From positions 310,001-374,000 of the forward strand of contig CM106586.1 of the NCBI GenBank assembly GCA_048013815.1: 64,000 nucleotides of DNA. Reading direction: 5' to 3'. Shown piece by piece: positions 30,197 through 57,120 of the stretch (position 1 is the stretch's first letter; each line of letters begins with the position of its first letter). The position numbers and the translations under genes are program-made. The notes under the pieces were generated by a model. It saw only the letters and a program-made list of their open reading frames with translations. It searched no databases and was not told the DNA's origin. The stretch comes from Setoptus koraiensis (lineage: Eukaryota > Animalia > Arthropoda).

Positions 30197-30450
30197 TGAA
30201 AAATTAATGAGCTTGATGTGCTCGCCTTGGATATTGCAAAGGTAACTTCTCTCAATTATCCAGAGATCAAATACAATCAGGACCAGCTCGATCGTGCCGC
30301 TTATTCTTGTCAACAATATTTTGAGAGACCAACTAGGATGGTTCGCCATGGAAAGATACAAGACCAAAGGAAAGTCAAGTTCATGAATGTATCCAATTTA
30401 AGCGCAAGGCCAATCCAACAATTATCAAGAATTACGATGTTGTCAGTTTT
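30197..30450 (+). pseudogene. Diverged paralogue fragment of the 585-aa antisense orphan gene
   Basis: LALDIAKVTSLNYPEIKYNQDQLDRAAYSCQQYFERPTRMVRHG aligns to residues ~58-102 of 44990-46747; after a 1-nt deletion FKRKANPTIIKNYDVVSF matches FKRKANLAIVRNYDVVSF; cut by HINE. Confidence 0.85.
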
Positions 30451-37931: not shown

Positions 37932-38050
37932 GATAGTTTGTAATGCGCGCTCCGCCGGAGCATCTGCACGAGCTGACACTGGGTGGCGCTGCTGCTGAAC
38001 TTGCGTTATTCTGATAATTTGTAAAGCGCGCTCCGGTGGAGCGTGCAAAA

Positions 38051-38118
38051 TTGGTTGGTTTGTTTGGTTGGTTGGTTTGGTTGGTTGGTTGGTTGGTTGG
38101 TTGGTTGGTTGGTTGGTT
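38051..38118 (-). repeat. (AACC)n tract at 3' end of non-LTR element, left copy
   Basis: (TTGG)n run immediately after AATAAAAGCCACTT (minus strand). Confidence 0.9.
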
Positions 38119-38342
38119 AAGTGGCTTTTATTTATATATATGTTACATCAAAAGAAGATATGATACATTACATATATATCCGGGTCGTGGTGCAACTCAT
38201 TTGGGATCTATCGACCATGAGTTATATGACCCGCCGGGTTTTAAAGTTTAAAAGAACGTCAGAGCCCGAATCCCTGCGTGTCTTACATCTTATTTCAGCC
38301 GATTACATTAGTTGACAATTGATTAAATTGACTTGTGTTTTG

Positions 38343-39877
38343 TTATCCTTCGTGATTGGTCCCATCATTGATTGCCAATAATGCTATTCGGGAATTCTCG
38401 ATCCAGTCAAGCTTTTTATTCTTATGAATGAATTTCTTGAGCCTGTAATAGGCAGTTCTATCTGCCATAATATCCTTCAGTGTATTGTACCCTTTTGGTT
38501 TGATATACTCTTCCAAGACCTGTCTGTCCTCATTGTATGCCTGGCATTCAAATGTGTAATGTTCCGCATTATCTATGGCCCTGATGTTGCGACTTGCGCA
38601 CGGTTCACAGTAGGGATATCTAACCAGTTCTTGTTTGCTTAGCATATCGTTAAAATAGCCATGGCCTGTTAAAATCTGCGTTATCCGATAGCCCGGAGTA
38701 ATCCATTTCATCTGAAGTCTGTCGATAACATTGGGAAATATTCGTCGGGTGTGCTTGCCCCAGGTTTTTGGATCAGCGTTCTCTCTTAGATAGCAGTCAT
38801 TCCAAATGTCTGCCATCCATTTTTTAACTTGGGCTTTATGATCTTTTACTTTTTCTGAGTCTATGTCGTATATACTTGTGTCTACTTCCGGCCATATCTC
38901 GCTTGTTTCGTGTAGTTTGATGTATTCAATGTTTGCCCAGATCAGCCTGATTGCATTTGCCGAGTCTGAGTTGTTCATATCTCTGTGGATCAGCTCACTG
39001 TATTTGATGCCTGTTGCGTTCTCGAAGTAAATAAAGTGGAACGTTTTGTCGTTTTGGAGCAATCGTCTTCTTTTGAGTTGATCCACAATGTATTCTGTTG
39101 CCAATAGTTGCATTGTAACTGTCGTTCCTTTCCACATTGGTGTCTTCCTAAGTCTATACGCTTTGATAGTCTCGCCAGTTAGGAGATCCAAGTGATATGA
39201 GTATACATGAGTGGCATCCTCTTCAGCCTTAATATAATGATGCTCAATGTGATTTCCTATTGGTGTTGTGAGCAGGCTGTATCCTCTTTTTGTTCTTTTA
39301 TTGTTGACCCGTCTTACGTATGTGTTTGGTGCCGGTAGTTGATGTGTTTTTATTATTTCCGGTATTCCTACCTTGATTCTGCACCTCCTAATTAATGACA
39401 AATTACTCAGTGTTTGTCCCTTGTGCGAGTGTGTATAGCCATGCACATTGCTTAGGTACCAGTTTATGGCTTGTTCTTCGATTAATAAATTAATAGGTAG
39501 GACTCCGCTAACAATGTTTGCTATTGAGCTAGATATCTTTGAGTATGCCCTACAGAGCCTTACTAGTTTCTCTCTCTGCCATTTGACCAGGGCATTAGTG
39601 CATTTTCTACTTTTCACCACCTTGTGCCAGATCGGTGATCCGTACGTGAGTACTGGCTGGATGGCTCCTTCAAAGATTCGTATTGCATTCCTGGGGTCTA
39701 GTCCCCACTTGTTGCTGCAAGCGGGCGATAGTAGTTGCCACTTTGTATTTGCTTTTTTCATTGCTATTTCTACATGTTCGGTCCACGTAAGTTCATTGTT
39801 TATGTATAAACCCAATATTCTAACCAGTTTAGATTCGGTTATTATATGTTTGTCCACCTTGATGCTGAACACATTTG
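38343..39877 (-). CDS. pol: ORF2 C-terminal part (RT thumb, RNase H-like remnant, zinc finger)
   Basis: VRILGLYINNELTWTEH; ITQILTGHGYFN; CEPC..DNAEHYTFEC; rejoins 40884 in frame once the MITE and one TSD are removed (..GRTNV|FSIK..), giving ~1464 aa. Confidence 0.9.
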
Positions 39878-40883
39878 GGTTATTGTTCGGAACACGTACC
39901 ACGCCCAATTTGGGTATTTTGGGTATTTTTTGGTAGGGTATTGTGCCCTGATATCCGAATAGGAATTCCGGAAGTGCGGAAATTCTTCGTTCCCGAGTTA
40001 CCCGAGGTACCGCATTGTGGGTATTTTAGGGTATTTGGAGGCATATTGACGATACAATCGATCGTACCCACCCGAACGGACATCGGTTAGGGTACCAACA
40101 TCTTTATACCGAAGATAGATTGCACCTAGAAGCTCTAGAAGTCGAGTAAAAGCAGTCGAACTGAAGAGGCGTGACCGATGCGTGCGGCGCGGAGTGAAAC
40201 TGCACCCGCAATTAGTCAGACTACACACCGAGTCTCAGCGCGTGCACTATTACTATTTGCTACCAGTTGCGCGTGCCCATTCACGTGTGGACCAGATTCA
40301 CGTACATCACACGATCAGGGATATATCCACAAACTTTTGGGATTTTACCACCGAAAAAGAGTTCCACAGTCGAGCAGGTTGGGCCCGGGCCGGAAGAGGG
40401 GTTCGGCCTCCAGTCGTCCACGCCTACGGCCTGCGGCCTCCGGCGGGACGACTGACGGCCACCTAACTAAAAAAGATTCTTCCCGAGGAATGGGAGTCGA
40501 GTGGGCGGGGCCCGTGATCGGGCCGGGTTTCTTTCATATATGGTGTGAACCCGCTTTAAAGACCGTAACTAGGTGGTAGTACAGCCGAATCGCGTCAGTT
40601 TGCAAACCGGAAGTGTGACTTGCACTTATTGTCCAATCGCCAACGAGTTGATGTAAGAGATTTACCTCAACGCTATCACATAGATAGCATCTGGATCTAG
40701 ACAATCATACAAAAATCTAAGGTCTGGGGCCCCTCAGAGGCCCGGAAAATGCATTTTTCCATATCTCCGGAAGTAGAAATTTCCGCACTTCCGGACCACT
40801 ATATTTGTTCTTTAGGGCCCCTTCGGGGCCCATGTGTGAAGTTTGGAGGAAATCGGGCTTGGTACGTGTTCCGAACAACACCC
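39878..40883. mobile_element. Family-M MITE (1006 bp) in ORF2, 8-bp TSD CACATTTG
   Basis: TSD at 39870-39877 and 40884-40891; TIRs GG(T/G)T(A/G)TTGTTCGGAACACGTACCA. Confidence 0.95.
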
Positions 40884-43751
40884 CACATTTGTCCTGCCTT
40901 TGTTTTTGAGACTTAGGTTTCTTTGTTTGGCTTGCTGTAGGTCTTCTGTAGTTCCCGTAATAGCTTGGTTATCTGTACAATCCATCAGACTCCTATGTCT
41001 TATTTGTTCAAAATACAATAGTTCAGTTTTTTCTGGGCCGAAGCTCAGTTTTACTGATGTGCCCCAGTTTAGGACTCTTTTCAGAGCTCTCTTGATTTTG
41101 CTTTGTAGTAACTCTTGTGTTCTGGCCCATATTATAAGAGTGGCATCATCCGCGTAAGCTACTATGCGAGTGTCCGTATTCTCGTTTGCTATTCGCAGCA
41201 AGTCATTGTAGACTATGTTCCACAGCATAGGACCGGACGATGATCCTTGCGGACAGCCGCGATTAGGTGATTTATCTGAGGTAATGCCATTGTATTCGAG
41301 AATCGCCTTTCTGTCTGCTAAGTATGATTTAGCTAAGCTGAGTAAGTTGTGGCTTATCCCTGATTTGCGTAATTGACGTATGATCTCCGGGTGCCATGCG
41401 TTGTCGAAGGCCCCGGAAACGTCCAGACATATGATAGCCACTACTCCTTCTTTGCGTTTGTCATTGACCGTGTCTACAATCTCTTTTACTGCATGAATTG
41501 TGGACTTGTGGGCCTCGAATCCATTTTGTTCTTGACTAATACCCGTTGTTTGTCGAAATTGTCCCATGATATTGTTGATGACAATCTTATCCAATAGTTT
41601 AGCCATGTTGCTTAACAGACATATGGGACGCCACCCTTTGACCGTCGCTGGGTCTTTGCCTGGTTTGGGGATCATAACCACGAAGGCCACTTTCCATTGC
41701 TTAGGGAAGTATCCTTGTAGTAAGCAATTTTGGATTATGGTAGTGATATGTCTGGTTACTTTCCCTGCGATACCTCGCAGCAGTTCTCCAGTTATTCCGT
41801 CTATTCCCGGAGCTTTCTTGTATGGTAAAGTGTTGATAAGCGTATCTACTTCCTGTTGAGTGATTGTTATATCTTCAAATTGACTATAGTGCTCCTTTCT
41901 GTTGTCCTCTCGGATACATTTTTGTTGTTCCGTATCGGTGTTGATGTCATCGTTTGGAAATGATGCTGCCATTAAGGCGTCTAACACCTGTTTGTAGTCA
42001 GTAATTTGTTTTCCATCCGGAGTGGTGATGGCTTGCATACAAGTTTTGAATTTCCGCTTATTCATAATTGTTTTGTATGCTGATTCCCAAGCGCCTATGC
42101 TCGAGGATATCGATACGTATTCCATCCACGAGTCTTTTCTGGCTTGTTTGATCTCTTTGACATATAGTTTCTTGGCTAAATCCATGTTGGCTTTGACTTC
42201 TGGGTCATTGCCATGCTCGGTGTTGTAATATGCCCTAGCTGCGTTCTTATAAGTGCTACGGAGCTTCGTTAGTTTTGAGTTCCACCATGGTGCAGCGTTG
42301 TCGCTTTTTTTATGTCGCATTTTACCAGATAGTATTTCTCTGGCTTTGCGCTTCCATCTACTGTACCCCTTTTTTGATGTTATAATCTCAAGTGTTATAT
42401 AAATGTTTACCGGTTGTCTAGTATCGGTATTGTTTTCAATGTCCCAAAGTTGTTGAGTTATTCCGGTGATCTGGTATGCAGTGATGGGTTCATTTGTTAC
42501 GCATTTAAATAGATATTTATGGGCTCTGTTATTGTTGCTGCACCTTATTGAGCCGTTTATTGTTATTTCTTGTGTGTATGAGCTTGTTTTTATGTTGTTG
42601 GTGCCTTTTGATGAGCTTATTATAGGTTTTATGTTCGTTGTGGCCTGATACTTTTCAACCGTTGCGTGAATATGATTGGTAAGATCTGCTACCGCATTAT
42701 CGATTTTATGATTGTCTTCCAGTATTGCTGGTATTTTCCTGCTGAGATATTGGTCATCAATTAGGTTATTTATGCTGATAATATCTTGTTGGTTAAGCCT
42801 GCCAAAAGTTTTTCTAATACTTCTGTACCTTGGCTTATTATCATTTATTTCTATGAGGATTGGCGCGTGGTCACTTATGGCCGAGCCTGGATCTATGCGC
42901 CACTCATTTAGTTTTGTCAGAGTGTTCTTATCCACCAGTGTGAGGTCTATATTACTCATGCCTAGTGCGTTACTGTTTGCGTTTGGGTCGATTTGGTTGT
43001 TGGTGGCTCTGTATGTTGCTGACCCTTGTGCGAAGTTAATGGCGTTTAGGTTGTATAATCCATTGATTTCTGCGAAGTTAATCAGTAGATTAGCTCTTGT
43101 ATTATCTATTTGCCTAACAAACGAGTCCCAGCTCGGATGGCGAGTGTTAAAATCTCCCGCTATTATGAGACCTTTGTTTTTGTGTTCTTTAATTAGTTTG
43201 GTGAGGTCACTATATAGCTTGGCCAGATAGCTTGTCTCGGTACCATCATTGTTTAGTATGATTTCGTTACGTTTTGGTTTTACATAGACTGACACTACTA
43301 GGTATTGTCTATCGGCCTCTATTATGGCTGCCGTGTAGTCCAGCGGTGCTTTACCACCTTCTCCTGTGATACAGATGAATGGCATAGCCTTATTGCAGCA
43401 TATTATTGCTGCGGACGTAATTGCCTGTCCAGTTGCTGTTAGCGTCTTCCTGCTACTACATCTGACATTATGACCCATTCCGGTTATCTTTCCGTCTCTA
43501 CTTGTATGCTTCTCGCTAGCAATGATTAAGTCTGCTTTGTAGGTATGAGCTTCTTCTAACAAGGTACAGTTGGCCTCTGAGGATTTGCGACAGTTCGCCT
43601 GAATTATTCTTATACTGCCTTGGTGCAAAGATACGTTTGTGAGTCTTTTTCCCGCTTGGTGTTCTCTTGAGCCAAGTGAGGTACTCTTGGTCTGGTAGCC
43701 AAATCGAACTTTTCGTCGTCGAACTTTTTTGTGTCGAGCCATTGCAGACAT
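40884..43751 (-). CDS. pol: ORF2 N-terminal part: APE endonuclease + reverse transcriptase
   Basis: IRIIQANC, IIASE, IAGDFN, SNIDLTL, SDH; KAPGIDG, WRPICLLS, LDVSGAFD, GCPQGS, YADD. Confidence 0.95.
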
Positions 43752-46700
43752 TCTAACTCGTCATTCCTTGTGCTGTAATAATTCACGTACGATCTATTAT
43801 TTTCAATTCCATTTGTGAATAACTTCGTGTTAATTGAATCATCGATAAATTGGATATTGTATAAATTGTCATCATGGAATATATATTGAATTCTGCATTC
43901 TCTATTGCTCATCCATATAGAATAAAAGTGAGCATATGTCCGAGAATACGAGAGCCGGAATATGTCTGGTGGATTACTCGTATTACTGTGGTGGATATAA
44001 ATATTGAGCAAAGAGGATATTGGCGGCCACGAAACGGACCTTACACCGATTACTATTTTAAGACCAAGGTCGACAAAGATTTCAACGTTACAACCATAAG
44101 GGTCTTGACCAATGAAGACGCCGGCTTCACTATTGATAGCGTGCGATTGTCCGATTGAACCGTCGTTGGTTATATTAGAGAGAACCATCTCCCATTTATC
44201 TTGTAGCATACATATAATAGTTGTTGAAAATAAACTTGCTCTCTTATAACGGGATGAGATTTCATTATTAATAATTATAGTTCTGTCGAGTTTTAAATTT
44301 CTGGGACTTGTTGTTGCATTGATGATTTTTTGCATGTAACCTTGTTTGTATTTATTAACAATCACTTCATTGTAATTGATTAAACATTGTGAATACCTGT
44401 TGCATTGATGAATAATAGTGTTTTGGTTGCTTAATTTGTTTCTATCGTTGTGCAATGGATACCTATTTGGGTTGCATTTGTGCAATTTGATACATCTTGC
44501 ATCATTCTGATTGTAACTTTTGGTGTTGTGCACATTTCTTATTTTCTGCTCATTTGCACAGAGAGCAGTTTTTGTGCTTGTTCTTATGTGTCTGTTCCAT
44601 GTTATTCCTGCGCTTGTTTGCATTCTGTGCATTTTGATGTTTTCTTGTGCCAGGTGTTCTGTTCCTGTGCCAAGAATGTAGTTTGTGCGCGGGACGTGTT
44701 TCTTTGTCCATTTCATATTGATGAGTGGGCCCCGACTTTTTCGAAATATTAATGCCATCTTAATAATAGTTACATTTTTAGAAACCTCATAACACAACGA
44801 TAAATAATCTGCAAAAATTATAATAATACCACGCAAGACCTTCAAATTATTCAACTTTAACGAAATAGGCAAATTCAAGTAATCCAAATTGCAGCAACAG
44901 TTGTTTTCACAACTACATTCCTCCAACCGATTACCAAAATTCCTCATTAAATAATTGAAACAGTTGTTGTAACAACTATATTCTTCAGTATGCCTCCAAG
45001 GAAAACAAGAAAAATTACTGCTAGCTCGACATCTGGTGTCGTAGCTCTTTGTGACAATGAATCTGACCATGAGGATTTGGCTCCTGCCATAAGTGTAACT
45101 AATGATACTTTTTATACCTCGAAGGCCCGAGCAAGAAAATCCACTAATGAGAAAGATCACTTGGCGATAGACATCGCTAAAGTGACTTCGTTGAATTTCC
45201 CAGAGCTTAAATTTTCGCAGGACCAATTGGATCGAGCCGGATTCGCCTGTCAGCATTATTTTGAGAGAGGAACTCGGATGGTACGCCATGGGGCTTTCAA
45301 GGATCAAAGAAGGGTTCGTTTTATGCTTGGTTCCATGTTCAAAAGGAAGGCTAATTTGGCAATCGTCCGTAATTATGATGTAGTTAGTTTCCTCATTCCT
45401 GATGGCGAAGGATTCGGGAACCCATTGCTCATCTCCTGTTTTTATGGAAACAATTATATTGGCTATCGTAACGATAAAAATTCGGAACCATTCCCTGGAC
45501 TGGATGCTAACCATATTATTTTGCAAAGTGTGGTAATTCATACAGTTTCCAACATGACTGCCTATAAGACAATTCCAGTTCACCTTCGCAAGGGAATTCT
45601 CCTGCAGGATCCTCAGTTGGAGGAGGCGGACCATAGTATTAGGTCGTTTGATAAAATATTCTGGTCTATCCGAGTGGTGAAAGCGAAAGAATATACTGAT
45701 AAGATGTTTGTTATAGCCAAGTTGTGTGCCGGATTGGAGAGATATATTGCTCATGATGCCCCAACAAGAGCCATTAATTGCCACGGAGATTATTCTAACC
45801 AGAAGTGGAAGTTCCAAGATACAATGGAGAAGCCCGAGAGTTACATCAAGAGATTTGAGGATCCGGACAATTCTCCCTTTAGAGTGGACAGTATTGATCG
45901 TCACCCGCAATCCGATGAGTCTTTCAATATGCCTCACCGATTGTTGAGTGGCTTGTCTAGTGATACAAAGCCTTCTAGTTTGCCATTCGATCGTTGTTTT
46001 GGTTGTACCGATCCATTTTCTTGCACTGCATTTAACGCCAGCTGTAGGGAATACTTCGAACGGATCTCCCATGGATTTCCAGTTGAATATTATAACGTAC
46101 TTAATTACCGGACCACTGACATTGTAGGAGACAAGGTGACTGAGATCACACGGATTGGTATTCAACCTATTTGCTTTAGAGGCCACTTCATATGGGCTAT
46201 CTTTTTCAATGATAGTGAGCACCTGCCGGTTACCCATTTGGTGTTTTATAAATTTCACAAGGAGATGTACCTGAGTTATGAAGATAGCAAGTCCGTCAAA
46301 GCTATTTTGAGAAGCCGCTTCGATTTTGGTAGCGACTGTTTCTTGCTTGAGGACGAATCCAGCTTGGGACGGTATTGTTATTATGTAAGCTCTACTAGGA
46401 AGTGTCCATGTGTTAATCGACCATGGGAACTTCTTCATTCTGTAATATTTATGTGCCCATTCGGACCAAATGAGATAGATGGAGAACACGGACAGACCTC
46501 TATCATCAATAGACAGAGAAACAATTATCTTATTGAGGAGGCGCTCAATGCCAATCACGTTAATTTTAAGGACTTCTCTGTAGGTGAATTGGCCATTCTT
46601 GGATTGTCTAATGAAGAGGCTAAGGAGATTGCCCATTATTACGAGGACGACTTCCAGCTGACCGTCAAGAATCCGTATCATAATCGGGAGCCATTGCCTG

Positions 46701-47164
46701 AGTTGGTAGGAGATAAAAACGAGTTGTTTTATAATTCGCTCAAGTAAATCATGTATATCCTCAAAATAAATCTGTATAATATCATCCAATTGTATAATAA
46801 GAAGAAAATAAACTTGTGTAATCTTCTCCAATTGTATAAAGGAGAGAAGATAATAAACTTGCACAATATAAACCGTTATTTCATAGTGTGTCACTTCTCC
46901 AATCTTTCCTTTTGTTTCATCATTTTTATCTCTTATGTTATTTTTCTTTTTTGTTCTATTTGTCTCAATAGTCTTTTCCTTTAATTGGAGAAGATTATTT
47001 ACTAATTTAGGTTCACATATGTTATAATCCATCTTAACACTCCTCACGATGTTGTAGTCTCGAGAGATCGACAAGTATACGCATGTGTACCTATAATTCT
47101 CGACAAATAATTTCACCATTTCAGGACCGTATATTGAGAAATAGAAAAAAAAGAAAAATAACAT
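43610..47164 (-). CDS. 1184-codon ORF1-position frame, no recognisable domain, reverse complement of antisense genes
   Basis: ORF track; stop TAA falls at the APE start (IRIIQAN); ORF2 is -1 relative; first ATG at 47119. Confidence 0.65.
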   Translation of the reverse strand: MLFFFFFYFSIYGPEMVKLFVENYRYTCVYLSISRDYNIVRSVKMDYNICEPKLVNNLLQLKEKTIETNRTKKKNNIRDKNDETKGKIGEVTHYEITVYIVQVYYLLSFIQLEKITQVYFLLIIQLDDIIQIYFEDIHDLLERIIKQLVFISYQLRQWLPIMIRILDGQLEVVLVIMGNLLSLFIRQSKNGQFTYREVLKINVIGIERLLNKIIVSLSIDDRGLSVFSIYLIWSEWAHKYYRMKKFPWSINTWTLPSRAYIITIPSQAGFVLKQETVATKIEAASQNSFDGLAIFITQVHLLVKFIKHQMGNRQVLTIIEKDSPYEVASKANRLNTNPCDLSHLVSYNVSGPVIKYVIIFNWKSMGDPFEVFPTAGVKCSARKWIGTTKTTIEWQTRRLCITRQATQQSVRHIERLIGLRVTINTVHSKGRIVRILKSLDVTLGLLHCILELPLLVRIISVAINGSCWGIMSNISLQSGTQLGYNKHLISIFFRFHHSDRPEYFIKRPNTMVRLLQLRILQENSLAKVNWNCLIGSHVGNCMNYHTLQNNMVSIQSREWFRIFIVTIANIIVSIKTGDEQWVPESFAIRNEETNYIIITDDCQISLPFEHGTKHKTNPSLILESPMAYHPSSSLKIMLTGESGSIQLVLRKFKLWEIQRSHFSDVYRQVIFLISGFSCSGLRGIKSIISYTYGRSQILMVRFIVTKSYDTRCRASSNFSCFPWRHTEEYSCYNNCFNYLMRNFGNRLEECSCENNCCCNLDYLNLPISLKLNNLKVLRGIIIIFADYLSLCYEVSKNVTIIKMALIFRKSRGPLINMKWTKKHVPRTNYILGTGTEHLAQENIKMHRMQTSAGITWNRHIRTSTKTALCANEQKIRNVHNTKSYNQNDARCIKLHKCNPNRYPLHNDRNKLSNQNTIIHQCNRYSQCLINYNEVIVNKYKQGYMQKIINATTSPRNLKLDRTIIINNEISSRYKRASLFSTTIICMLQDKWEMVLSNITNDGSIGQSHAINSEAGVFIGQDPYGCNVEIFVDLGLKIVIGVRSVSWPPISSLLNIYIHHSNTSNPPDIFRLSYSRTYAHFYSIWMSNRECRIQYIFHDDNLYNIQFIDDSINTKLFTNGIENNRSYVNYYSTRNDELECLQWLDTKKFDDEKFDLATRPRVPHLAQENTKREKDSQTYLCTKAV
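43874..44158 (+). CDS. 94-aa antisense ORF in register with ORF1 frame
   Basis: ATG start; same codon phase as 43610 and 44990; aromatic, beta-strand-like composition. Confidence 0.35.
   Translation: MEYILNSAFSIAHPYRIKVSICPRIREPEYVWWITRITVVDINIEQRGYWRPRNGPYTDYYFKTKVDKDFNVTTIRVLTNEDAGFTIDSVRLSD
44990..46747 (+). CDS. 585-aa orphan protein, antisense to the retrotransposon
   Basis: ATG-to-TAA intronless ORF; N-terminal PPRKTRK; Cys clusters; AATAAA downstream; conserved paralogue at ~30.2 kb. Confidence 0.85.
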   Translation: MPPRKTRKITASSTSGVVALCDNESDHEDLAPAISVTNDTFYTSKARARKSTNEKDHLAIDIAKVTSLNFPELKFSQDQLDRAGFACQHYFERGTRMVRHGAFKDQRRVRFMLGSMFKRKANLAIVRNYDVVSFLIPDGEGFGNPLLISCFYGNNYIGYRNDKNSEPFPGLDANHIILQSVVIHTVSNMTAYKTIPVHLRKGILLQDPQLEEADHSIRSFDKIFWSIRVVKAKEYTDKMFVIAKLCAGLERYIAHDAPTRAINCHGDYSNQKWKFQDTMEKPESYIKRFEDPDNSPFRVDSIDRHPQSDESFNMPHRLLSGLSSDTKPSSLPFDRCFGCTDPFSCTAFNASCREYFERISHGFPVEYYNVLNYRTTDIVGDKVTEITRIGIQPICFRGHFIWAIFFNDSEHLPVTHLVFYKFHKEMYLSYEDSKSVKAILRSRFDFGSDCFLLEDESSLGRYCYYVSSTRKCPCVNRPWELLHSVIFMCPFGPNEIDGEHGQTSIINRQRNNYLIEEALNANHVNFKDFSVGELAILGLSNEEAKEIAHYYEDDFQLTVKNPYHNREPLPELVGDKNELFYNSLK

Positions 47165-47204
47165 AAGAGATAAAAATGATGAAACAAAAGGAAAGATTGG
47201 AGAA

Positions 47205-50200
47205 GTGACACACTATGAAATAACGGTTTATATTGTGCAAGTTTATTATCTTCTCTCCTTTATACAATTGGAGAAGATTACACAAGTTTATTTTCTTCTT
47301 ATTATACAATTGGATGATATTATACAGATTTATTTTGAGGATATACATGATTTACTTGAGCGAATTATAAAACAACTCGTTTTTATCTCCTACCAACTCA
47401 GGCAATGGCTCCCGATTATGATACGGATTCTTGACGGTCAGCTGGAAGTCGTCCTCGTAATAATGGGCAATCTCCTTAGCCTCTTCATTAGACAATCCAA
47501 GAATGGCCAATTCACCTACAGAGAAGTCCTTAAAATTAACGTGATTGGCATTGAGCGCCTCCTCAATAAGATAATTGTTTCTCTGTCTATTGATGATAGA
47601 GGTCTGTCCGTGTTCTCCATCTATCTCATTTGGTCCGAATGGGCACATAAATATTACAGAATGAAGAAGTTCCCATGGTCGATTAACACATGGACACTTC
47701 CTAGTAGAGCTTACATAATAACAATACCGTCCCAAGCTGGATTCGTCCTCAAGCAAGAAACAGTCGCTACCAAAATCGAAGCGGCTTCTCAAAATAGCTT
47801 TGACGGACTTGCTATCTTCATAACTCAGGTACATCTCCTTGTGAAATTTATAAAACACCAAATGGGTAACCGGCAGGTGCTCACTATCATTGAAAAAGAT
47901 AGCCCATATGAAGTGGCCTCTAAAGCAAATAGGTTGAATACCAATCCGTGTGATCTCAGTCACCTTGTCTCCTACAATGTCAGTGGTCCGGTAATTAAGT
48001 ACGTTATAATATTCAACTGGAAATCCATGGGAGATCCGCTCGAAGTATTCCCTACAGCTGGCGTTAAATGCAGTACAAGAAAATGGATCGGTACAACCAA
48101 AACAACGATCGAATGGCAAACTAGAAGGCTTTGTATCACTAGACAAGCCACTCAACAATCGGTGAGGCATATTGAAAGACTCATCGGATTGCGGGTGACG
48201 ATCAATACTGTCCACTCTAAAGGGAGAATTGTCCGGATCCTCAAATCTCTTGATGTAACTCTCGGGCTTCTCCATTGTATCTTGGAACTTCCACTTCTGG
48301 TTAGAATAATCTCCGTGGCAATTAATGGCTCTTGTTGGGGCATCATGAGCAATATATCTCTCCAATCCGGCACACAACTTGGCTATAACAAACATCTTAT
48401 CAGTATATTCTTTCGCTTTCACCACTCGGATAGACCAGAATATTTTATCAAACGACCTAATACTATGGTCCGCCTCCTCCAACTGAGGATCCTGCAGGAG
48501 AATTCCCTTGCGAAGGTGAACTGGAATTGTCTTATAGGCAGTCATGTTGGAAACTGTGTGAATTACCACACTTTGCAAAATAATATGGTTAGCATCCAGT
48601 CCAGGGAATGGTTCCGAATTTTTATCGTTACGATAGCCAATATAATTGTTTCCATAAAAACAGGAGATGAGCAATGGGTTCCCGAATCCTTCGCCATCAG
48701 GAATGAGGAAACTAACTACATCATAATTACGGACGATTGCCAAATTAGCCTTCCTTTTGAACATGGAACCAAGCATAAAACGAACCCTTCTTTGATCCTT
48801 GAAAGCCCCATGGCGTACCATCCGAGTTCCTCTCTCAAAATATTGCTGACAGGCGAATCCGGCTCGATCCAATTGGTCCTGCGAAAATTTAAGCTCTGGG
48901 AAATTCAACGAAGTCACTTTAGCGATGTCTATCGCCAAGTGATCTTTCTCATTAGTGGATTTTCTTGCTCGGGCCTTCGAGGTATAAAAAGTATCATTAG
49001 TTACACTTATGGCAGGAGCCAAATCCTCATGGTCAGATTCATTGTCACAAATTGCTACGACACCAGATGTCGAGCTAGCAGTAATTTTTCTTGTTTTCCG
49101 TGGAGGCATACTGGAGAATATAGTTGTTACAACAACTGTTTCAATTATTTAATAAGGAATCTTGGTAATCGGTTGGAGGAATGTAGTTGTGAAAACAACT
49201 GTTGCTGCAATTTGGATTACTTGAATTTGCCTATTTCGTTAAAGTTGAATAATTTGAAGGTCTTGCGTGGTATTAATATAATTTTTGCAGATTATTCATC
49301 GTTGTGTTATGAGGTTTCTAAAAATGTAACTATTATTAGGATGGCATTAATATTTCGAAAAAGTCGGGGCCCACTCATCAATATGAAATGGACAAAGAAA
49401 CACGTCCCGCGCACAAACTACATTCTTGGCACAGGAACAGAACACCTGGCACAAGAAAACATCAAAACGCACAGAATGCAAACAAGCGCAGAAATAACAT
49501 GGAACAGACACATAAGAACAAGCACAAAAACTGCTCTCTGTGCAAATGAGCAGAAAATAAGAAAGGTGCACAACACCAAAAGTTACAATCAGAATGATGC
49601 AAGATGTATCAAATTGCACAAATGCAACCCAAATAGGTATCCATTGCACAACGATAGAAACAAATTAAGCAACCAAAACACTATTATTCATCAATGCAAC
49701 AGGTATTCACAATGTTTAATTAATTACAATGAAGTGATTGTTAACAAATACAAACAAGGTTACATGCAAAAAATCATCAATGCAACAACAAGTCCCAGAA
49801 ATTTAAAACTCGACAGAACTATAATTATTAATAATGAAATCTCATCTCGTTATAAGAGAGCAAGTTTATTTTCAACAACTATTATATGTATACTACAAGA
49901 TAAATGGGAGATGGTTCTCTCTAATATAACCAACGACGGTTCAATCGGACAATCGCACGCTATCAATAGTGAAGCCGGCGTCTTCATTGGTCAAGACCCT
50001 TATGGTTGTAACGTTGAAATCTTTGTCGACCTTGGTCTTAAAATAGTAATCGGTGTAAGGTCCGTTTCGTGGCCGCCAATATCCTCTTTGCTCAATATTT
50101 ATATCCACCACAGTAATACGAGTAATCCACCAGACATATTCCGGCTCTCGTATTCTCGGACATATGCTCACTTTTATTCTATATGGATGAGCAATAGAGA

Positions 50201-50489
50201 ATGCAGAATTCAATATATATTCCATGATGACAATTTATACAATATCCAATTTATCGATGATTCAATTAACACGAAGTTATTCACAAATGGAATTGAAAAT
50301 AATAGATCGTACGTGAATTATTACAGCACAAGGAATGACGAGTTAGAATGTCTGCAATGGCTCGACACAAAAAAGTTCGACGACGAAAAGTTCGATTTGG
50401 CTACCAGACCAAGAGTACCTCACTTGGCTCAAGAGAACGCCAAGCGGGAAAAAGACTCACAAACATATCTTTGCACCAAGGCAGTATAA
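47205..50489 (+). CDS. ORF1-position frame, right copy (1094 aa)
   Basis: Mirror of 43610-47164; still stop-free. Confidence 0.65.
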   Translation: MTHYEITVYIVQVYYLLSFIQLEKITQVYFLLIIQLDDIIQIYFEDIHDLLERIIKQLVFISYQLRQWLPIMIRILDGQLEVVLVIMGNLLSLFIRQSKNGQFTYREVLKINVIGIERLLNKIIVSLSIDDRGLSVFSIYLIWSEWAHKYYRMKKFPWSINTWTLPSRAYIITIPSQAGFVLKQETVATKIEAASQNSFDGLAIFITQVHLLVKFIKHQMGNRQVLTIIEKDSPYEVASKANRLNTNPCDLSHLVSYNVSGPVIKYVIIFNWKSMGDPLEVFPTAGVKCSTRKWIGTTKTTIEWQTRRLCITRQATQQSVRHIERLIGLRVTINTVHSKGRIVRILKSLDVTLGLLHCILELPLLVRIISVAINGSCWGIMSNISLQSGTQLGYNKHLISIFFRFHHSDRPEYFIKRPNTMVRLLQLRILQENSLAKVNWNCLIGSHVGNCVNYHTLQNNMVSIQSREWFRIFIVTIANIIVSIKTGDEQWVPESFAIRNEETNYIIITDDCQISLPFEHGTKHKTNPSLILESPMAYHPSSSLKILLTGESGSIQLVLRKFKLWEIQRSHFSDVYRQVIFLISGFSCSGLRGIKSIISYTYGRSQILMVRFIVTNCYDTRCRASSNFSCFPWRHTGEYSCYNNCFNYLIRNLGNRLEECSCENNCCCNLDYLNLPISLKLNNLKVLRGINIIFADYSSLCYEVSKNVTIIRMALIFRKSRGPLINMKWTKKHVPRTNYILGTGTEHLAQENIKTHRMQTSAEITWNRHIRTSTKTALCANEQKIRKVHNTKSYNQNDARCIKLHKCNPNRYPLHNDRNKLSNQNTIIHQCNRYSQCLINYNEVIVNKYKQGYMQKIINATTSPRNLKLDRTIIINNEISSRYKRASLFSTTIICILQDKWEMVLSNITNDGSIGQSHAINSEAGVFIGQDPYGCNVEIFVDLGLKIVIGVRSVSWPPISSLLNIYIHHSNTSNPPDIFRLSYSRTYAHFYSIWMSNRECRIQYIFHDDNLYNIQFIDDSINTKLFTNGIENNRSYVNYYSTRNDELECLQWLDTKKFDDEKFDLATRPRVPHLAQENAKREKDSQTYLCTKAV
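47352..49109 (-). CDS. 585-aa orphan protein, right copy
   Basis: Differs from left copy at only two residues seen (L20I, H89Q). Confidence 0.85.
   Translation of the reverse strand: MPPRKTRKITASSTSGVVAICDNESDHEDLAPAISVTNDTFYTSKARARKSTNEKDHLAIDIAKVTSLNFPELKFSQDQLDRAGFACQQYFERGTRMVRHGAFKDQRRVRFMLGSMFKRKANLAIVRNYDVVSFLIPDGEGFGNPLLISCFYGNNYIGYRNDKNSEPFPGLDANHIILQSVVIHTVSNMTAYKTIPVHLRKGILLQDPQLEEADHSIRSFDKIFWSIRVVKAKEYTDKMFVIAKLCAGLERYIAHDAPTRAINCHGDYSNQKWKFQDTMEKPESYIKRFEDPDNSPFRVDSIDRHPQSDESFNMPHRLLSGLSSDTKPSSLPFDRCFGCTDPFSCTAFNASCREYFERISHGFPVEYYNVLNYRTTDIVGDKVTEITRIGIQPICFRGHFIWAIFFNDSEHLPVTHLVFYKFHKEMYLSYEDSKSVKAILRSRFDFGSDCFLLEDESSLGRYCYYVSSTRKCPCVNRPWELLHSVIFMCPFGPNEIDGEHGQTSIINRQRNNYLIEEALNANHVNFKDFSVGELAILGLSNEEAKEIAHYYEDDFQLTVKNPYHNREPLPELVGDKNELFYNSLK
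49941..50225 (-). CDS. 94-aa antisense ORF, right copy
   Basis: Identical protein to 43874-44158. Confidence 0.35.
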   Translation of the reverse strand: MEYILNSAFSIAHPYRIKVSICPRIREPEYVWWITRITVVDINIEQRGYWRPRNGPYTDYYFKTKVDKDFNVTTIRVLTNEDAGFTIDSVRLSD

Positions 50490-51286
50490 GAATAATTCAG
50501 GCGAACTGTCACAAATCCTCAGAGGCCAACTGTACCTTGTTAGAAGAAGCTCATACCTACAAAGCAGACTTAATCATTGCTAGCGAGGTGCATACAAGTA
50601 GAGACGGAAAGATAACCGGAATGGGTCATAATGTCAGATGTAGTAGCAGGAAGACGCTAACAGCAACTGGACAGGCAATTACGTCCGCAGCAATAATATG
50701 CTGCAATAAGGCTATGCCATTCATCTGTATCACAGGAGAAGGTGGTAAAGCACCGCTGGACTACACGGCAGCCATAATAGAGGCCGATAGACAATACCTA
50801 GTAGTGTCAGTCTATGTAAAACCAAAACGTAACGAAATCATACTAAACAATGATGGTACCGAGACAAGCTATCTGGCCAAGCTATATAGTGACCTCACCA
50901 AACTAATTAAAGAACACAAAAACAAAGGTCTCATAATAGCGGGAGATTTTAACACTCGCCATCCGAGCTGGGACTCGTTTGTTAGGCAAATAGATAATAC
51001 AAGAGCTAATCTACTGATTAACTTCGCAGAAATCAATGGATTATACAACCTAAACGCCATTAACTTCGCACAAGGGTCAGCAACATACAGAGCCACCAAC
51101 AACCAAATCGACCCAAACGCAAACAGTAACGCACTAGGCATGAGTAATATAGACCTCACACTGGTGGATAAGAACACTCTGACAAAACTAAATGAGTGGC
51201 GCATAGATCCAGGCTCGGCCATAAGTGACCACGCGCCAATCCTCATAGAAATAAATGATAATAAGCCAAGGTACAGAAGTATTAGA

Positions 51287-52377
51287 ACAAGTAATACTGA
51301 TCAAATCAGTATTTCGAGCGCTTAATTTTTTGTGTGGACAAGTATTGTTGAAGGATTCAAAGGAGTTTATGACAACCTGTTAACCACCGAACTTCAAAAT
51401 GTGACCATCGAACATTGACCATCGAACATCGAACGAGCAGATGGAAATGTCATCAGAAATTCGAATTTTCAATTTCGAATTTCGAAGTTCGAAATGTGAC
51501 CATCGAACATTGACCACCGAACTCGGACCACCGAACTTCGACAGAGCCGATGAAACTTTAATCAGAAATTCGAATTTTCAATTTCGAATTTCGAAGTTCG
51601 GAATGTGACCATCGAACATTGACCATCGAACATCGAACGAGCAGATGAAACTATCATCAGAAAATCGAATTTTCAATTTCGAATTTCGAAGTTCGAATTG
51701 TGGCCACCGAACTTCGAATTGTAACCATCGAACATCGAACGAGCAGATGAAACTATCATCAGAAAATCGAATTTTCAATTTCGAATTTCGAATTGTTACC
51801 ACCGAGTTTCGAAATGTGACCATCGAACTGTGACCATCAAATTTCGATAGAGCAGATAAAATTATCATCAGGAAATCAAATTTTCAATTTTGAATTTCGA
51901 AGTTCGAATTGTGACCATCGAACTCTGACCATGGAACTACGACCATCGAACTTCGACGAAGCAGCTGAATCTCATTTCAGAAAATCAAATTTTCAATTTC
52001 CAATTTCGAAGTTCGAAATTCGAATTGTCACCACCGAACTCTGACCATAGAACTAAGAACACTGAACCACTAACTTCGAACTAGCAGCTGAAACTCCCAT
52101 GAGAAATTCGAATTTTCAATTTTGAAGTTCGATTTGTCACCACCGAGCTCCTCACAAATTCGACCTAGTCAAATCTCCATAGGATTGCATACGAAATATT
52201 TTCGAGTAAAGCGATAATAGACCAAGTCAAATCTACATCGGAATACATGTGTAATATCTAGCAGGATTCTCACAAATTTGACTAAGTCAAACCTCCATAG
52301 GATTACATAGTCACGTGAATAAACCTAGTCATCATCACCACCCCAATAGCAGCTTAATTAAAATTAAGCGCTAAAAA
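51287..52377 (-). mobile_element. Complete HINE (~1.09 kb), insertion without TSD
   Basis: Both termini present; empty site in the left arm is the T5 run at 42809-42813. Confidence 0.95.
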
Positions 52378-54302
52378 CATTTGGCAGGCTTAACCAACAA
52401 GATATTATCAGCATAAATAACCTAATTGATGACCAATATCTCAGCAGGAAAATACCAGCAATACTGGAAGACAATCATAAAATCGATAATGCGGTAGCAG
52501 ATCTTACCAATCATATTCACGCAACGGTTGAAAAGTATCAGGCCACAACGAACATAAAACCTATAATAAGCTCATCAAAAGGCACCAACAACATAAAAAC
52601 AAGCTCATACACACAAGAAATAACAATAAACGGCTCAATAAGGTGCAGCAACAATAACAGAGCCCATAAATATCTATTTAAATGCGTAACAAATGAACAC
52701 ATCACTGCATACCAGATCACCGGAATAACTCAACAACTTTGGGACATTGAAAACAATACCGATACTAGACAACCGGTAAACATTTATATAACACTTGAGA
52801 TTATAACATCAAAAAAGGGGTACAGTAGATGGAAGCGCAAAACCAGAGAAATACTATCTGGTAAAATGCGACATAAAAAAAGCGACAACGCTGCACCATG
52901 GTGGAACGCAAAACTAACGAAGCTCCGTAGCACTTATAAGAACGCAGCTAAGGCATATTACAACACCAAGCATGGCAATGACCCAGAAGTCAAAGCCAAC
53001 ATGGATTTAGCCAAGAAACTATATGTCAAAGAGATCAAACAAGCCAGAAAAGACTCGTGGATGGAATACGTATCGATATCCTCGAGCATAGGCGCCTGGG
53101 AATCAGCATACAAAACAATTATGAATAAACGGAAATTCAAAACTTGTATGCAAGCCATCACCACTCCGGATGGAAAACAAATTACTGACTACAAACAGGT
53201 GTTAGACGCCTTAATGGCAGCATCATTTCCAAACGATGACATCAACACCGATACGGAACAACAAAAACGTATCCGAGAGGACAACAGAAAGGAGCACTAT
53301 AGTCAATTTGAAGATATAACAGTCACTCAACAGGAAGTAGATACGCTTATCAACACTTTACCCTACAAGAAAGCTCCGGGAATAGACGGAATAACTGGAG
53401 AACTGCTGCGAGGTATCGCAGGCAAAGTAACCAGACATATCACTACCATAATTCAAAATTGCTTACTACAAGGATACTTCCCTAAGCAATGGAAAGTGGC
53501 CTTCGTGGTTATGATCCCCAAACCAGGCAAAGACCCAGCGACGGTCAAAGGGTGGCGTCCCATATGTCTGTTAAGCAACATGGCTAAACTATTGGATAAG
53601 ATTGTCATCAACAATATCATGGGACAATTTCGACAAACAACGGGTATTAGTCAAGAACAAAATGGATTCGAGGCCCACAAGTCCACAATTCATGCAGTAA
53701 AAGAGATTGTAGACACGGTCAATGACAAACGCAAAGAAGGAGTAGTGGCTATCATATGTCTGGACGTTTCCGGGGCCTTCGACAACGCATGGCACCCAGA
53801 GATCATACGTCAATTACGCAAATCAGGGATAAGCCACAACTTACTCAGCTTAGCTAAATCATACTTAGCAGACAGAAAGGCGATTCTCGAATACAATGGC
53901 ATTACCTCAGATAAATCACCTAATCGCGGCTGTCCGCGAGGATCATCGTCCGGTCCTATGCTGTGGAACATAGTCTACAATGACTTGCTGCGAATAGCAA
54001 ACGAGAATACGGACACTCGCATAGTAGCTTACGTGGATGATGCCACTCTTATAATATGGGCCAGAACACAAGAGTTACTACAAAGCAAAATCAAGAGAGC
54101 TCTGAAAAGAGTCCTAAACTGGGGCACATCAGTAAAACTGAGCTTCGGCCCAGAAAAAACTGAACTATTGTATTTTGAACAAATAAGACATAGGAGTCTG
54201 ATGGATTGTACAGATAACCAGGCTATTACGGGAACTACAGAAGACCTACAGCAAGCCAAACAAAGAAACCTAAGTCTCAAAAACAAAGGCAGGACAAATG
54301 TG

Positions 54303-57045: not shown

Positions 57046-57118
57046 AACCAACAACCAACCAAAACAACCAACAACCAAAACCAACCAACCAAACCAACCA
57101 ACCAAACAAACCAACCAA
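57046..57118 (+). repeat. (AACC)n tract at 3' end of non-LTR element, right copy
   Basis: Imperfect AACC run after AATAAAAGCCACTT. Confidence 0.9.
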
Positions 57119-57120
57119 TT

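Follow-up and report, generated by a model that had tools for sequence, protein, structure and literature searches.

A LINE-like retrotransposon with a stop-free sense frame in place of ORF1, codon-aligned with a conserved antisense gene

In a 64,000-nt stretch of DNA from Setoptus koraiensis (GenBank assembly GCA_048013815.1, contig CM106586.1, positions 310,001 to 374,000; hereafter the window), we found a non-LTR (LINE-like) retrotransposon of the APE type, about 9 kb long and ending 3′ in a simple-repeat tail, in which the position of ORF1 is occupied by a long stop-free sense frame (S) lying in codon register over an intact antisense gene (A; Table 1). The opening of S over A is real and beyond chance, and it is maintained in two ways: the codons TTA, CTA and TCA have been purged from A, and stops are lacking in both flanking segments where S alone is open. 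Judged from sequence comparisons, selection acts on A and not on the S protein, whose frame is open but whose sequence is not conserved. We think that a non-conserved S was probably overprinted on an older antisense A, with translation through S serving ORF2 or the RNA. To our knowledge, antisense overlap in codon register at the kilobase scale had previously been described for only a few RNA viruses (narnaviruses), where its purpose is debated, and our literature search found no earlier description of such a retrotransposon layout.

Table 1 Features of the element in the window (strand relative to the contig; a dot marks features without strand).
Feature	Position	Strand	Description
A fragment, diverged second copy	30206..30450	+	One frameshift; in-register minus frame open throughout
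3′ UTR and (AACC)n-type tail, left copy	38051..38345	-	3′ terminus of element
ORF2 C-terminal part, left copy	38346..40025	-	559 aa, 51% identical to P0001 C-terminus
Foreign repeat DNA splitting ORF2	39939..40886	.	About 0.9 kb, GC 0.53, present in both arms
ORF2 N-terminal part, left copy	40812..43751	-	APE endonuclease and reverse transcriptase, 979 aa
S, left copy	43610..47164	-	1184 aa counted from first ATG; element-sense, in ORF1 position
S-only segment, A start to ORF2	43613..44989	-	459 codons, 36% GC
A_AAA_AAG heptamer	43724..43730	-	Phase of S; within the 142-nt overlap of S and ORF2
A, left copy	44990..46747	+	585 aa, intact, antisense to element, codon-aligned with S
Palindrome spacer	46953..47146	.	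Unique, 194 nt, at the centre; open in left-copy S frame
S frame, right copy	47145..50489	+	1114 codons without stop (ORF 47145-50486)
A gene, right copy	47352..49109	-	585 aa; 2 aa differences from left-copy A
ORF2 right copy and tail	50348..57118	+	Pieces 50348-51325, 52368-54371, 55100-56176; UTR/(AACC)n 57046-57118

The window carries two copies of the element, one in each arm of a palindrome (37932-57237; arms of at least 9.3 kb, 99% identical). The right copy mirrors the left one, which is the region singled out by the initial annotation, and the two represent a single inverted segmental duplication rather than two insertions. An N gap (37432-37931) adjoins the left arm. In both copies the 5′ end of the element lies at the palindrome centre, and the spacer found there may be the 5′ end of the left copy. 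At the opposite end, the (AACC)n-type tail lies about 220 nt past the ORF2 stop (reading as (TTGG)n on the plus strand at 38051-38118, with its mirror at 57046-57118) and LTRs are absent, as is usual for non-LTR elements. The N-terminal part of ORF2 (40815-43751, minus strand) matched the Pfam families PF14529 (2e-15), PF03372 and PF00078 (9e-34), and is 58% identical to P0001, the ORF2 product of a related locus (L001, see below). ORF2 is disrupted in both window copies. Specifically, the alignment with P0001 skips from 40887 to 39938, and pieces of the intervening repeat occur in at least 10 other places in the window; the right-copy ORF2 additionally contains a tandem-repeat insertion at about 51290-52373.

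A and S both have codon phase 2 mod 3, meaning that their codons are aligned, and over 598 codons neither strand has a stop. A contains 43 Leu and 47 Ser, yet not one TTA, CTA or TCA codon, while these three make up 4.3-6.1% of codons in five other ORFs of the window. Given the amino-acid sequence of A and the codon usage of those five ORFs, 30.7 such codons would be expected (P(0)=2.6e-17); from the third-position A content of A alone, the expectation is 27.6 (P=1e-12). A-ending codons are otherwise common in A (36% of four-fold boxes; in pairs ending in A or G, 44% have A), and the only ones missing are TTA, CTA and TCA. The same was true when each gene served as its own reference: across four loci the within-gene expectation was 23-37 against none observed, whereas the controls (ORF2s and the non-ambigrammatic homologue L006) matched theirs (54 vs. 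48, 84 vs. 81 and 64 vs. 64.5). The genome does not avoid these codons in general, an outcome that the initial annotation had named as a possible refutation: they account for 4-6% of codons in gypsy elements and in the element's own ORF2.

These results agree with the initial annotation, which had been made from the letters and a list of open reading frames. It had described a 1184-codon minus-strand frame in the place of ORF1, ending at the first APE motif, devoid of a CCHC knuckle or other ORF1 motif, sharing its codon phase with a 585-aa plus-strand ORF that lacked TTA, CTA and TCA despite roughly 40 Leu and 50 Ser, and remaining open for some 460 further AT-rich codons and across the palindrome spacer. 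Each of these observations held on re-examination.

The full stop-free stretch of S (43613-47212) amounts to 1200 codons, the second longest in the window; further in-frame ATGs of the left copy fall within the spacer (47119 and 47032) and are alternative candidate starts. In the S-only segment that separates ORF2 from the start of A, the S frame has no stops while the other two sense frames have 25 and 38 (P(0)=1e-15), and it is likewise open over the spacer (P of about 5e-3). On the opposite strand, this segment presumably also holds a putative promoter and 5′ UTR of A. A Pfam search with S (1184 aa) and the overlapping A matched no family, and of the nucleic-acid-binding hallmarks of ORF1 proteins (CCHC, RRM/CTD, coiled coil or esterase) S showed neither a Pfam domain nor a zinc knuckle. 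The S-only flanks (190-460 codons) could code for a real, fast-evolving protein.

An exhaustive search yielded only 10 relatives, all on TE-like or unannotated eukaryote-like contigs. The A homologues are 21-34% identical to the window protein and come from contigs of other samples. On the opposite strand, seven of the loci keep the in-register frame open or almost open, also across the flanks outside A: L003, L004 and L005 have no S stops over 1003-1784 codons, and L001, L002, L008 and L009 have 0-4 where 9-26 would be expected. Specifically, S extends over 748 codons in register with A in L001, across the entire contigs of L003 and L004 (1098 and 1003 codons), and over at least 1784 codons spanning a 1294-aa A in L005, while L008 has a single S stop in 3359 nt. 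At its 5′ side S is truncated by the palindrome centre or by contig ends, and L001 is decayed. The codon-aligned register is common to L001-L005 and L008. Two homologues, L006 and L010, show no significant depletion of TTA, CTA and TCA; L006 uses them at the expected rate, has no ORF2 nearby and is an ordinary non-ambigrammatic gene. In the tree of A, each of the three supported clades includes ambigrammatic members, and L006 groups with the ambigrammatic L005 as its sister (support 100/99). Judging by branch lengths, the A proteins of ambigrammatic members are over one substitution per site apart, and the retention of the ambigram across relatives this diverged indicates selection. Two outcomes that the initial annotation had named in advance as counting against it, i.e., frequent S stops in diverged members and relatives with a gag-like ORF1, were not what we found; L001 and L005 instead share the antisense A with an in-register S. 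The interpretation given in the initial annotation is supported in this respect. The A/S modules of L001 and L008 have the same short tandem repeats at their flanks.

Three loci (the window, L001 and L005) are long enough for linkage to ORF2 to be visible, and in all three S lies directly upstream of an APE or APE/RT ORF2 (58% identity to the window ORF2 in L001 and 23% in L005). APE and RT domains were detected in P0001 and L005 as well. In the window, ORF2 has its ATG at 43751 and the S stop (43610-43612) sits 142 nt further in, at the IRIIQANC motif, where endonuclease similarity starts. In L005 the overlap, taken from the first ATG in the ORF2 frame to the S stop, is 8 nt, and in L001 the S stop is 32 nt into the open ORF2 frame. 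Relative to S, the ORF2 frame is -1 in the window and +1 in L001 and L005. The heptamer A_AAA_AAG in the window overlap may be a candidate -1 frameshift site, possibly one that arose by chance; it is absent from the L001 and L005 junctions, both of which are in the +1 frame. Given that the frame relation between S and ORF2 is not conserved, no single recoding mechanism is supported.

We found that similarity between relatives resides in A. Comparisons of A with A gave E-values from 1e-96 to 6e-4, whereas comparisons of S with S over the same DNA were mostly non-significant, and S-only segments compared between relatives and subfamilies had no detectable similarity. Among the seven differences between the palindrome arms within A, five are synonymous in A and one is synonymous in S, while in the S-only part (43634 to 44945) nine of 13 are nonsynonymous in S. 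The diverged A fragment at 30206..30450 retains 72-78% identity to A in the A frame and 48% in the S frame.

The A protein has an N-terminal domain without a known fold and a C-terminal His/Cys domain, in which Q392, P393, H399, F446, G460 and C474 are invariant. Clan CE cysteine proteases (Ulp1/SENP, adenain, poxvirus I7L, YopJ) have their catalytic residues in the order His, Asp/Glu/Asn, Cys, the Cys being at the N-terminus of a helix. In A, His399 and Cys474 do not vary among 9 sequences (at position 423, eight have His and one has Asp), and in the predicted model Cys474 precedes a helix (478-488). When we searched the full-length (pLDDT 58) and domain (pLDDT 73) models against the PDB with Foldseek, nearly all top matches were clan CE proteases, albeit weak ones (E 5e-3 to 1e-1, TM 0.3-0.45). 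At the sequence level, 13 members of the A family had no match to any Pfam family, Peptidase_C48 and its relatives included, at E up to 5, nor did the family profile match PDB sequences at E up to 10. Based on this weak but consistent fold match, the C-terminal domain is probably a clan CE (Ulp1/adenain-like) cysteine protease.

As A is old and has a non-ambigrammatic homologue (L006), we infer that A, an old folded protein, represents the older coding frame, and that changes silent in A opened the S frame on top of it; by analogy, this would be the same route as in ambigrammatic narnaviruses. The likeliest reasons for S to stay open would be the passage of ribosomes to ORF2 or the protection of the RNA, much as the initial annotation had proposed (ribosome transit to ORF2 and/or escape from NMD). 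In such a scheme, a full-length sense RNA would be translated from near its 5′ end without interruption through S. Ribosomes would then reach the S/ORF2 junction, where ORF2 protein could be produced via coupling, reinitiation or frameshifting, and the translation of S would spare the RNA from treatment as an early-stop mRNA with a 5-kb 3′ UTR. Expression of A would be separate, driven by an antisense promoter within the S-only segment. More tentatively, an old and diversified LINE-like lineage may have swapped its ORF1 for a sense ORF that is “empty” and overprints an antisense gene of protease-like type, a reading we find plausible rather than probable. If true, the element needs the translation of a frame whose protein sequence is irrelevant and expresses a trans-acting enzyme from the opposite strand; ambigrams are then no peculiarity of narnaviruses but an answer reached convergently by replicators with an RNA intermediate, which need ribosomes to move along, or cover, a long RNA.

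One alternative is that both strands encode needed proteins, S being an ORF1 protein that is functional and evolves fast. Poor conservation is common among LINE ORF1 proteins, S fills the ORF1 position and abuts ORF2, and in every locus it continues 190-460 codons beyond A on both sides. However, neither the S frames nor the S-only segments are detectably similar between subfamilies, S has no recognisable domain or zinc knuckle, arm differences are mostly nonsynonymous in S (six of seven within A, in addition to those in the S-only part), and its composition within the overlap (Leu, Ile and Ser together 32%) is typical of antisense translation. We thus consider dual coding unlikely. Somewhat less likely again is a narnavirus-like shielding, in which S is translated only to coat and protect the RNA against NMD, RNAi or nucleases (including dsRNA formed with the A transcript) and ORF2 starts independently. 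The in-register geometry and the non-conserved reverse frame are those of narnaviruses, for which translation itself has been proposed to matter (PMC8316113), and the window ORF2 has its own ATG ahead of the S stop; against this, S ends at the ORF2 start in three of three informative loci, neither continuing nor stopping elsewhere, which points to a link with ORF2 expression.

Two further readings are very improbable. The initial annotation had offered as its alternative an ambigrammatic RNA virus segment captured by and fused to the LINE; the one point in its favour is the geometry shared with narnaviruses. That proposal has no support: we found no RdRp or other viral domain, the only viral structure matches were weak ones to Ulp1-like proteases of giant viruses, the exhaustive search gave no viral relatives (all 10 are on TE-like or unannotated eukaryote-like contigs), and the homologue L006 is an ordinary gene. 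In the other, A is a gene of the host or of another TE outside the element, next to which the LINE inserts site-specifically. The 5′ boundary is undefined in every locus and the modules of L001 and L008 share their flanking repeats, as such a scenario would have it; yet it leaves unexplained why a reading frame in LINE sense should stay open across A and its two flanks and stop at ORF2, and fully normal codon usage is seen in just the one A homologue that lacks a nearby ORF2 (L006). Finally, the idea that codon bias (e.g., extreme GC3) opened the reverse frame without selection, a “pseudo-ambigram” as in cases from a brown-seaweed virus (PMC13262655), was refuted by the within-gene expectation test and has a negligible probability, given that A uses A-ending codons freely apart from the three that are gone, that ORF2s and L006 are at expectation, and that the AT-rich flanks outside A are open too.

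A close parallel to the layout is found in Culex narnavirus 1 and other ambigrammatic narnaviruses (PMC8316113; bioRxiv 10.1101/761890). In both systems a kilobase-scale reverse ORF occupies the codon-aligned (-0) frame and is kept open by avoidance of the three stop-complement codons, one frame encodes a conserved protein while the other is open yet non-conserved, and the arrangement persists across diverged relatives. By contrast, the element is integrated in DNA and copied by reverse transcriptase whereas a narnavirus is an RdRp replicon; the overlap covers roughly the 5′ 3.5 of 9 kb rather than nearly the whole genome; and it is the non-conserved frame that lies on the element's own sense strand, upstream of the polymerase gene, with the conserved gene antisense. 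Its counterpart in an element that resides in DNA, replicates by reverse transcription and is clearly under purifying selection would represent an independent origin of ambigrams, making RdRp-specific explanations less likely. As the sense frame ends exactly at the polymerase gene, the idea that translation itself is the function is directly testable with reporter constructs.

Among retrotransposons, A resembles ORF0 of human L1, an antisense coding sequence in the 5′ part of a LINE with an internal antisense promoter; ORF0 has about 70 codons, is primate-specific, lies in the 5′ UTR and is not known to overlap ORF1 in register. A, on the other hand, comprises 585-1294 codons and is conserved at deep divergence under a sense ORF (for ORF0 and the L1 antisense promoter, see the reviews PMC7827607 and PMC5203782). 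NeSL and Utopia elements are non-LTR retrotransposons associated with a clan CE (Ulp1-like) protease domain, comparable to the putative one of A, but there the protease is the N-terminal domain of a single sense polyprotein in elements with a restriction-like endonuclease (PMC4640811). Here the protease-like gene is separate and antisense, the endonuclease is of the APE type, and sequence similarity to Peptidase_C48 was not detected. Antisense proteins are likewise encoded in retroviruses and LTR elements, as with HTLV HBZ and the antisense ORFs of plant gypsy elements. HIV-1 ASP (PMC8781085) is similarly encoded antisense within a reverse-transcribing element; in such retroviral and LTR cases the antisense ORF is young, overprinted or accessory and short relative to the sense gene, whereas here the antisense A is conserved and the sense S appears to be overprinted on it. 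A LINE without a conventional ORF1 protein but with a conserved antisense enzyme gene would widen the range of non-LTR coding architectures, and it carries a warning for annotation, in that the longest ORF of such an element is not the conserved protein.

The long minus-strand frame at the ORF1 position of the LINE-like element (left copy; henceforth S) and the antisense gene within it (henceforth A) lie in a single codon phase, as the initial annotation had read them (coordinates are collected in the table below). S is stop-free over 43613-47212, i.e., 1200 codons, the second longest such stretch among all six frames of the window after a gypsy polyprotein. In an aligned arrangement of this kind only the Leu codons TTA and CTA and the Ser codon TCA give reverse stops, and all of them can be removed synonymously, as described for narnaviruses (bioRxiv 10.1101/761890). 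A contains 43 Leu and 47 Ser (against rough earlier counts of 40 and 50), yet none of these three codons. Their share is 4.3-6.1% in five other ORFs of the window, and with A's amino acids and the codon usage of those five ORFs 30.7 would be expected in A (P(0)=2.6e-17). Codon bias can yield a 'pseudo-ambigram', as shown in a seaweed virus (PMC13262655). We used a stricter, within-gene control based on A's own third positions (A ends 36% of the codons in four-fold boxes and 44% of those in A/G-ending pairs), which expects 27.6 such codons where none is seen (P=1e-12) and which also fits ORF2 of the same element (48 expected, 54 seen). Because A's own third positions expect these codons and predict ORF2, a codon-bias pseudo-ambigram is excluded.

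The openness of S is not confined to A. Beyond A, in the parts of S that we term S-only, 459 codons are open at 36% GC (the initial annotation had put this AT-rich extension at about 460), and the other two sense frames there contain 25 and 38 stops (P=1e-15). S is also stop-free over 68 arm codons past A's stop and, as had likewise been noticed, over the 64 codons of the palindrome spacer. Its end lies 142 nt into ORF2, in which Pfam identifies an APE endonuclease and a reverse transcriptase (RT).

Features of the window and of related loci
Feature	Locus	Coordinates	Strand	Remarks
S	window	43610..47164	minus	1184 aa
A	window	44990..46747	plus	585 aa; inside S, equal codon phase
AATAAA	window	46765-46770		18 nt past A stop
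A_AAA_AAG heptamer	window	43724-43730	minus	in phase with S, inside S/ORF2 overlap
Palindrome	window	37932-57237		arms 99% identical; S/A region is left arm
Palindrome centre	window	46953-47146		unique, 194 nt
Second S	window	47145-50486		right arm
Second A	window	47352-49109		right arm
3' UTR and (AACC)n-type tail	window	57046-57118, mirrored at 38051-38118		element's 3' end
Scaffold gap	window	37432-37931		500 N; abuts palindrome's left end
Repeat DNA interrupting ORF2	window	39939-40886, mirror about 54300-55190
Example sites of the same repeat units	window	1983, 25918, 26590, 27801, 29731, 31586, 32902, 57811, 62018
Tandem-repeat insertion in ORF2	window	about 51290-52373		right arm only
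Tandem arrays	window	36257-36931 and 51388-52053		102/211-bp period
81-bp tandem repeat	window	57127-57556		5 copies
Diverged A fragment	window	30206-30450	plus	isolated second copy; one frameshift
Ty3/gypsy gag-pol polyprotein	window	11681-17113	minus	1810 aa, apparently intact
Second gypsy element	window	17847-21355	plus	adjoins the first; two ORFs
Sense frame upstream of P0001	L001	1035-3278		748 codons
A homologue, two pieces	L001	1071-2189 and 2223-3293		opposite strand to sense frame, same register
Stop cluster in A	L001	2190-2222		three stops within 33 nt
Short tandem repeats	L001	3-428, 3424-3950, 8335-8481
Short tandem repeats	L008	1-129, 3085-3357
Non-ambigrammatic A homologue	L006	4555-7002		long low-complexity stretch at the N-terminus, with poly-Ser and poly-Asn

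A word-indexed homologue search with the 585-aa A returned nothing, and exact-sequence look-ups of the window proteins were negative. An exhaustive phmmer search with A gave 10 true relatives (E 5e-84 to 2e-5) and one false positive, P0034, a bacterial SLH protein with unremarkable bacterial genes around it. Relatives occur in the runs SRR33593474, SRR33594907, SRR18067412 and SRR18067306. A three-row alignment (A1) of the window A with two pieces from contig L001 was too ragged to serve as a search profile. The closest relative of ORF2, the database protein P0001 (58% identity), lies on L001, and upstream of it a long sense frame is again opposed by an A homologue. Expected counts from the within-gene control are compared with observed ones below for the loci bearing relatives of A; the depletion in L010 is not significant (P=0.08).

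TTA, CTA and TCA codons in A and its homologues, against the within-gene expectation
Locus	A codons	Observed	Expected
Window	585	0	27.6
L001 (two pieces)	352 + 373	0 + 0	8.7 + 13.0
L002	529	4	26.3
L003	661	0	22.8
L004	873	0	26.9
L005	1294	0	36.7
L008 (two pieces)	419 + 542	0 + 1	16.2 + 18.2
L009	270	3	8.8
L010	243	9	14.8
L006	815	64	64.5

The frame opposite A is open across the whole contigs of L003 and L004 (1098 and 1003 codons) and over at least 1784 codons in L005 (54% GC, from another sample), where it leads into an ORF bearing APE domains; L008 has one stop in this frame over 3359 nt. The S-only flanks on both sides of A lack stops in every locus (e.g., 189 and 247 codons in L003, 315 and 173 in L005), and the other sense frames of the L003 and L005 flanks carry 9-22. 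The ambigram (i.e., codon-aligned open frames on both strands) and an adjacent ORF2 occur together in all three loci that are long enough (window, L001 and L005). L006, from the same sample as L001, is the one long locus without ORF2 in its 8.2-kb contig, and it is also without the ambigram, the frame opposite A not being open. The ORFs around its A homologue had no Pfam match, with no RT or APE within the 8.2 kb, and this homologue could be a domesticated or an ancestral free-standing version of the gene. In a maximum-likelihood tree of A, ambigrammatic members fall in all three supported clades, i.e., (L005, L006) with support 100/99, (L004, (L001, L008)) with 100/98 and (window, L002) with 91/90. 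With terminal branches of about 0.5-1.8 substitutions per site, silent sites are saturated many times over, and the absence of the three codons must be actively maintained. The structural interpretation of the initial annotation, which had named three findings that would speak against it, is thus supported on each: the opposite frame stays open or nearly open in seven of the related loci (over whole contigs in L003 and L004), the three codons are not generally lacking (as the five other window ORFs and ORF2 show), and the block is no one-off insertion, with L001 and L005 sharing the S/A layout before ORF2.

The A/S module of the L001/L008 subfamily has the same short tandem repeats on either side. 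They are open in the sense frames, supply the N-terminal ~170 aa of the annotated ORF2 protein P0001 and resemble the monomers that form the promoter in mouse L1 5' UTRs. The only breaks in the L001 A gene before its C-terminal extension are the three clustered stops, which may be either a tiny intron or decay. On the A strand the cluster has a 35-nt GT...pyrimidine-tract...TAG span, which we did not accept as an intron because 35 nt, not being a multiple of 3, breaks the frame that both sides share. The C-terminal extension itself (matching residues 685-872 of the database protein P0027) is frameshifted.

S stands where ORF1 would be expected and is open all the way from a point upstream of A's 3' end to where ORF2 begins; the main rival explanation is that it encodes a real, fast-evolving ORF1 protein. 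The palindrome arms differ at 26 of 4144 positions. Seven differences lie within A, five of them synonymous in A and one in S; in the S-only part (43634-44945) four of 13 are synonymous in S, a roughly neutral share. Per site, differences amount to 0.4% in A and 0.9% in S-only sequence, and none creates a stop. Between loci, A matches A with E from 1e-96 to 6e-4, whereas the same DNA translated as S mostly gives no significant match; the sole strong S match (L001-L004, 3e-33) is the shadow of an A pair at 36-47% identity. No conserved protein was found in the S-only flanks; the one similarity, between L001 and L008, came from short tandem repeats. The diverged A fragment elsewhere in the window, beside which there is no ORF2 similarity, retains 72-78% identity in the A frame against 48% in the S frame. 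Taken together, the arm differences, the match statistics and this fragment indicate that amino-acid selection acts on A, and that S is selected only for openness.

No Pfam match was found for A, S or any relative, even at E up to 5, and the family profile had none among PDB sequences. An AlphaFold model of A (13 family sequences) was of moderate quality (pLDDT 58, pTM 0.57), with two folded regions at roughly residues 70-270 and 330-490. In a Foldseek search of the PDB nearly every match was a clan CE cysteine protease or one of the related acetyltransferases (NEDP1, SENP, Ulp1, poxvirus I7L, XopD, SseL and the YopJ family; best match E=8e-3, probability 0.96). The C-terminal domain modelled better alone (pLDDT 72.7) and gave the same list plus adenain (best E=5e-3); in a viral structure library there were weak Ulp1-like matches from giant viruses only. 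Across nine sequences (22-34% identical), Q392, P393, H399, F446, G460 and C474 are invariant, eight carry His at position 423 and the ninth Asp, and Cys474 directly precedes a helix in the model. This order of His, acidic or His, and Cys is compatible with clan CE. We tentatively predict that the C-terminal domain is a clan CE cysteine protease, an assignment that is only probable because the Foldseek scores are weak. The clan CE fold is ancient, and A has a non-ambigrammatic homologue in L006; from both we argue that, of the two coding frames, A is the older and S was overprinted on it.

S ends at the start of ORF2 in three loci, but the frame relation is not constant. In the window the two overlap by 142 nt with ORF2 in frame -1 relative to S; in L005 (+1) the S stop and the earliest ATG in the ORF2 frame overlap by 8 nt, and in L001 (+1) the S stop lies 32 nt into the open ORF2 frame. 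The A_AAA_AAG heptamer within the window overlap is a textbook -1 slippery-site pattern that is not conserved in L001 or L005; such patterns are fairly frequent in A-rich sequence, and it could be a chance occurrence. A start of S is visible in none of the loci. Reasoning from the sequences, we infer that the open S frame may serve ribosome transit to ORF2 and protection of the RNA. Ribosomes would enter the full-length RNA at its 5' end and translate unbroken through S up to ORF2, which would then be made by coupling, reinitiation or frameshifting, and this unbroken translation would hide the RNA from recognition as a premature-stop mRNA with a 5-kb 3' UTR. A would be transcribed from the opposite strand, its mRNA being expected to begin within the S-only segment (43613-44989) and to finish close to the AATAAA.

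By definition the element is an APE-type non-LTR retrotransposon, save that no ORF1 protein can be recognised in it. Set beside A, the antisense ORF0 in the L1 5' UTR is short, and the two cannot be compared in scale. With ambigrammatic narnaviruses, in which selection has been proposed to act on translation itself (PMC8316113), the element shares the aligned frame, codon depletion and conservation; unlike the element, these are RdRp replicons, and the overlap here is limited to the element's 5' third. In NeSL and Utopia a Ulp1-like protease forms an N-terminal domain encoded in sense, and the endonuclease is restriction-like (PMC4640811), whereas in our element the probable Ulp1-like protease is antisense and the endonuclease is APE. 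A full-text literature search for retrotransposons with ambigrammatic ORFs, or with long antisense ORFs in register, led only to narnaviruses, L1 ORF0 and HIV ASP, and within the literature searched the combination of a LINE with a narnavirus-style ambigram is undescribed.

The palindrome arms run on beyond the element's (AACC)n-type tail into flanking DNA, which makes the two copies a single inverted segmental duplication rather than separate insertions; twin priming was rejected as its origin because the arms include DNA past this 3' tail. An assembly fold-back is possible, but the arms differ by 26 substitutions in the inner 4.1 kb, plus insertions. In both arms ORF2 is interrupted by ~0.9 kb of GC-richer dispersed-repeat DNA, probably a short non-autonomous element, and so the window copy is probably non-autonomous. 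At least 10 further sites in the window bear units of this repeat. The right-arm ORF2 has an additional tandem-repeat insertion, into which one of two tandem arrays falls; these arrays are mutually related in inverted orientation. The 81-bp tandem repeat starts straight after the tail, has a GC-rich core (GCTCCGGCGGAGCGCGC) and could be an insertion target or a satellite.

Elsewhere the window is rich in transposable elements, with a DDE_3 transposase, a pair of gypsy elements, and RT fragments of copia and other kinds. No host gene lies in the window, and an Rfam search of it gave no match. The gypsy polyprotein comprises gag, zinc knuckle, protease, RT, RNase H and integrase domains. Its best relative (69%) is on a contig from SRR18067562, and its other matches, at about 39% or less, are to pseudoscorpion, frogs and mite.
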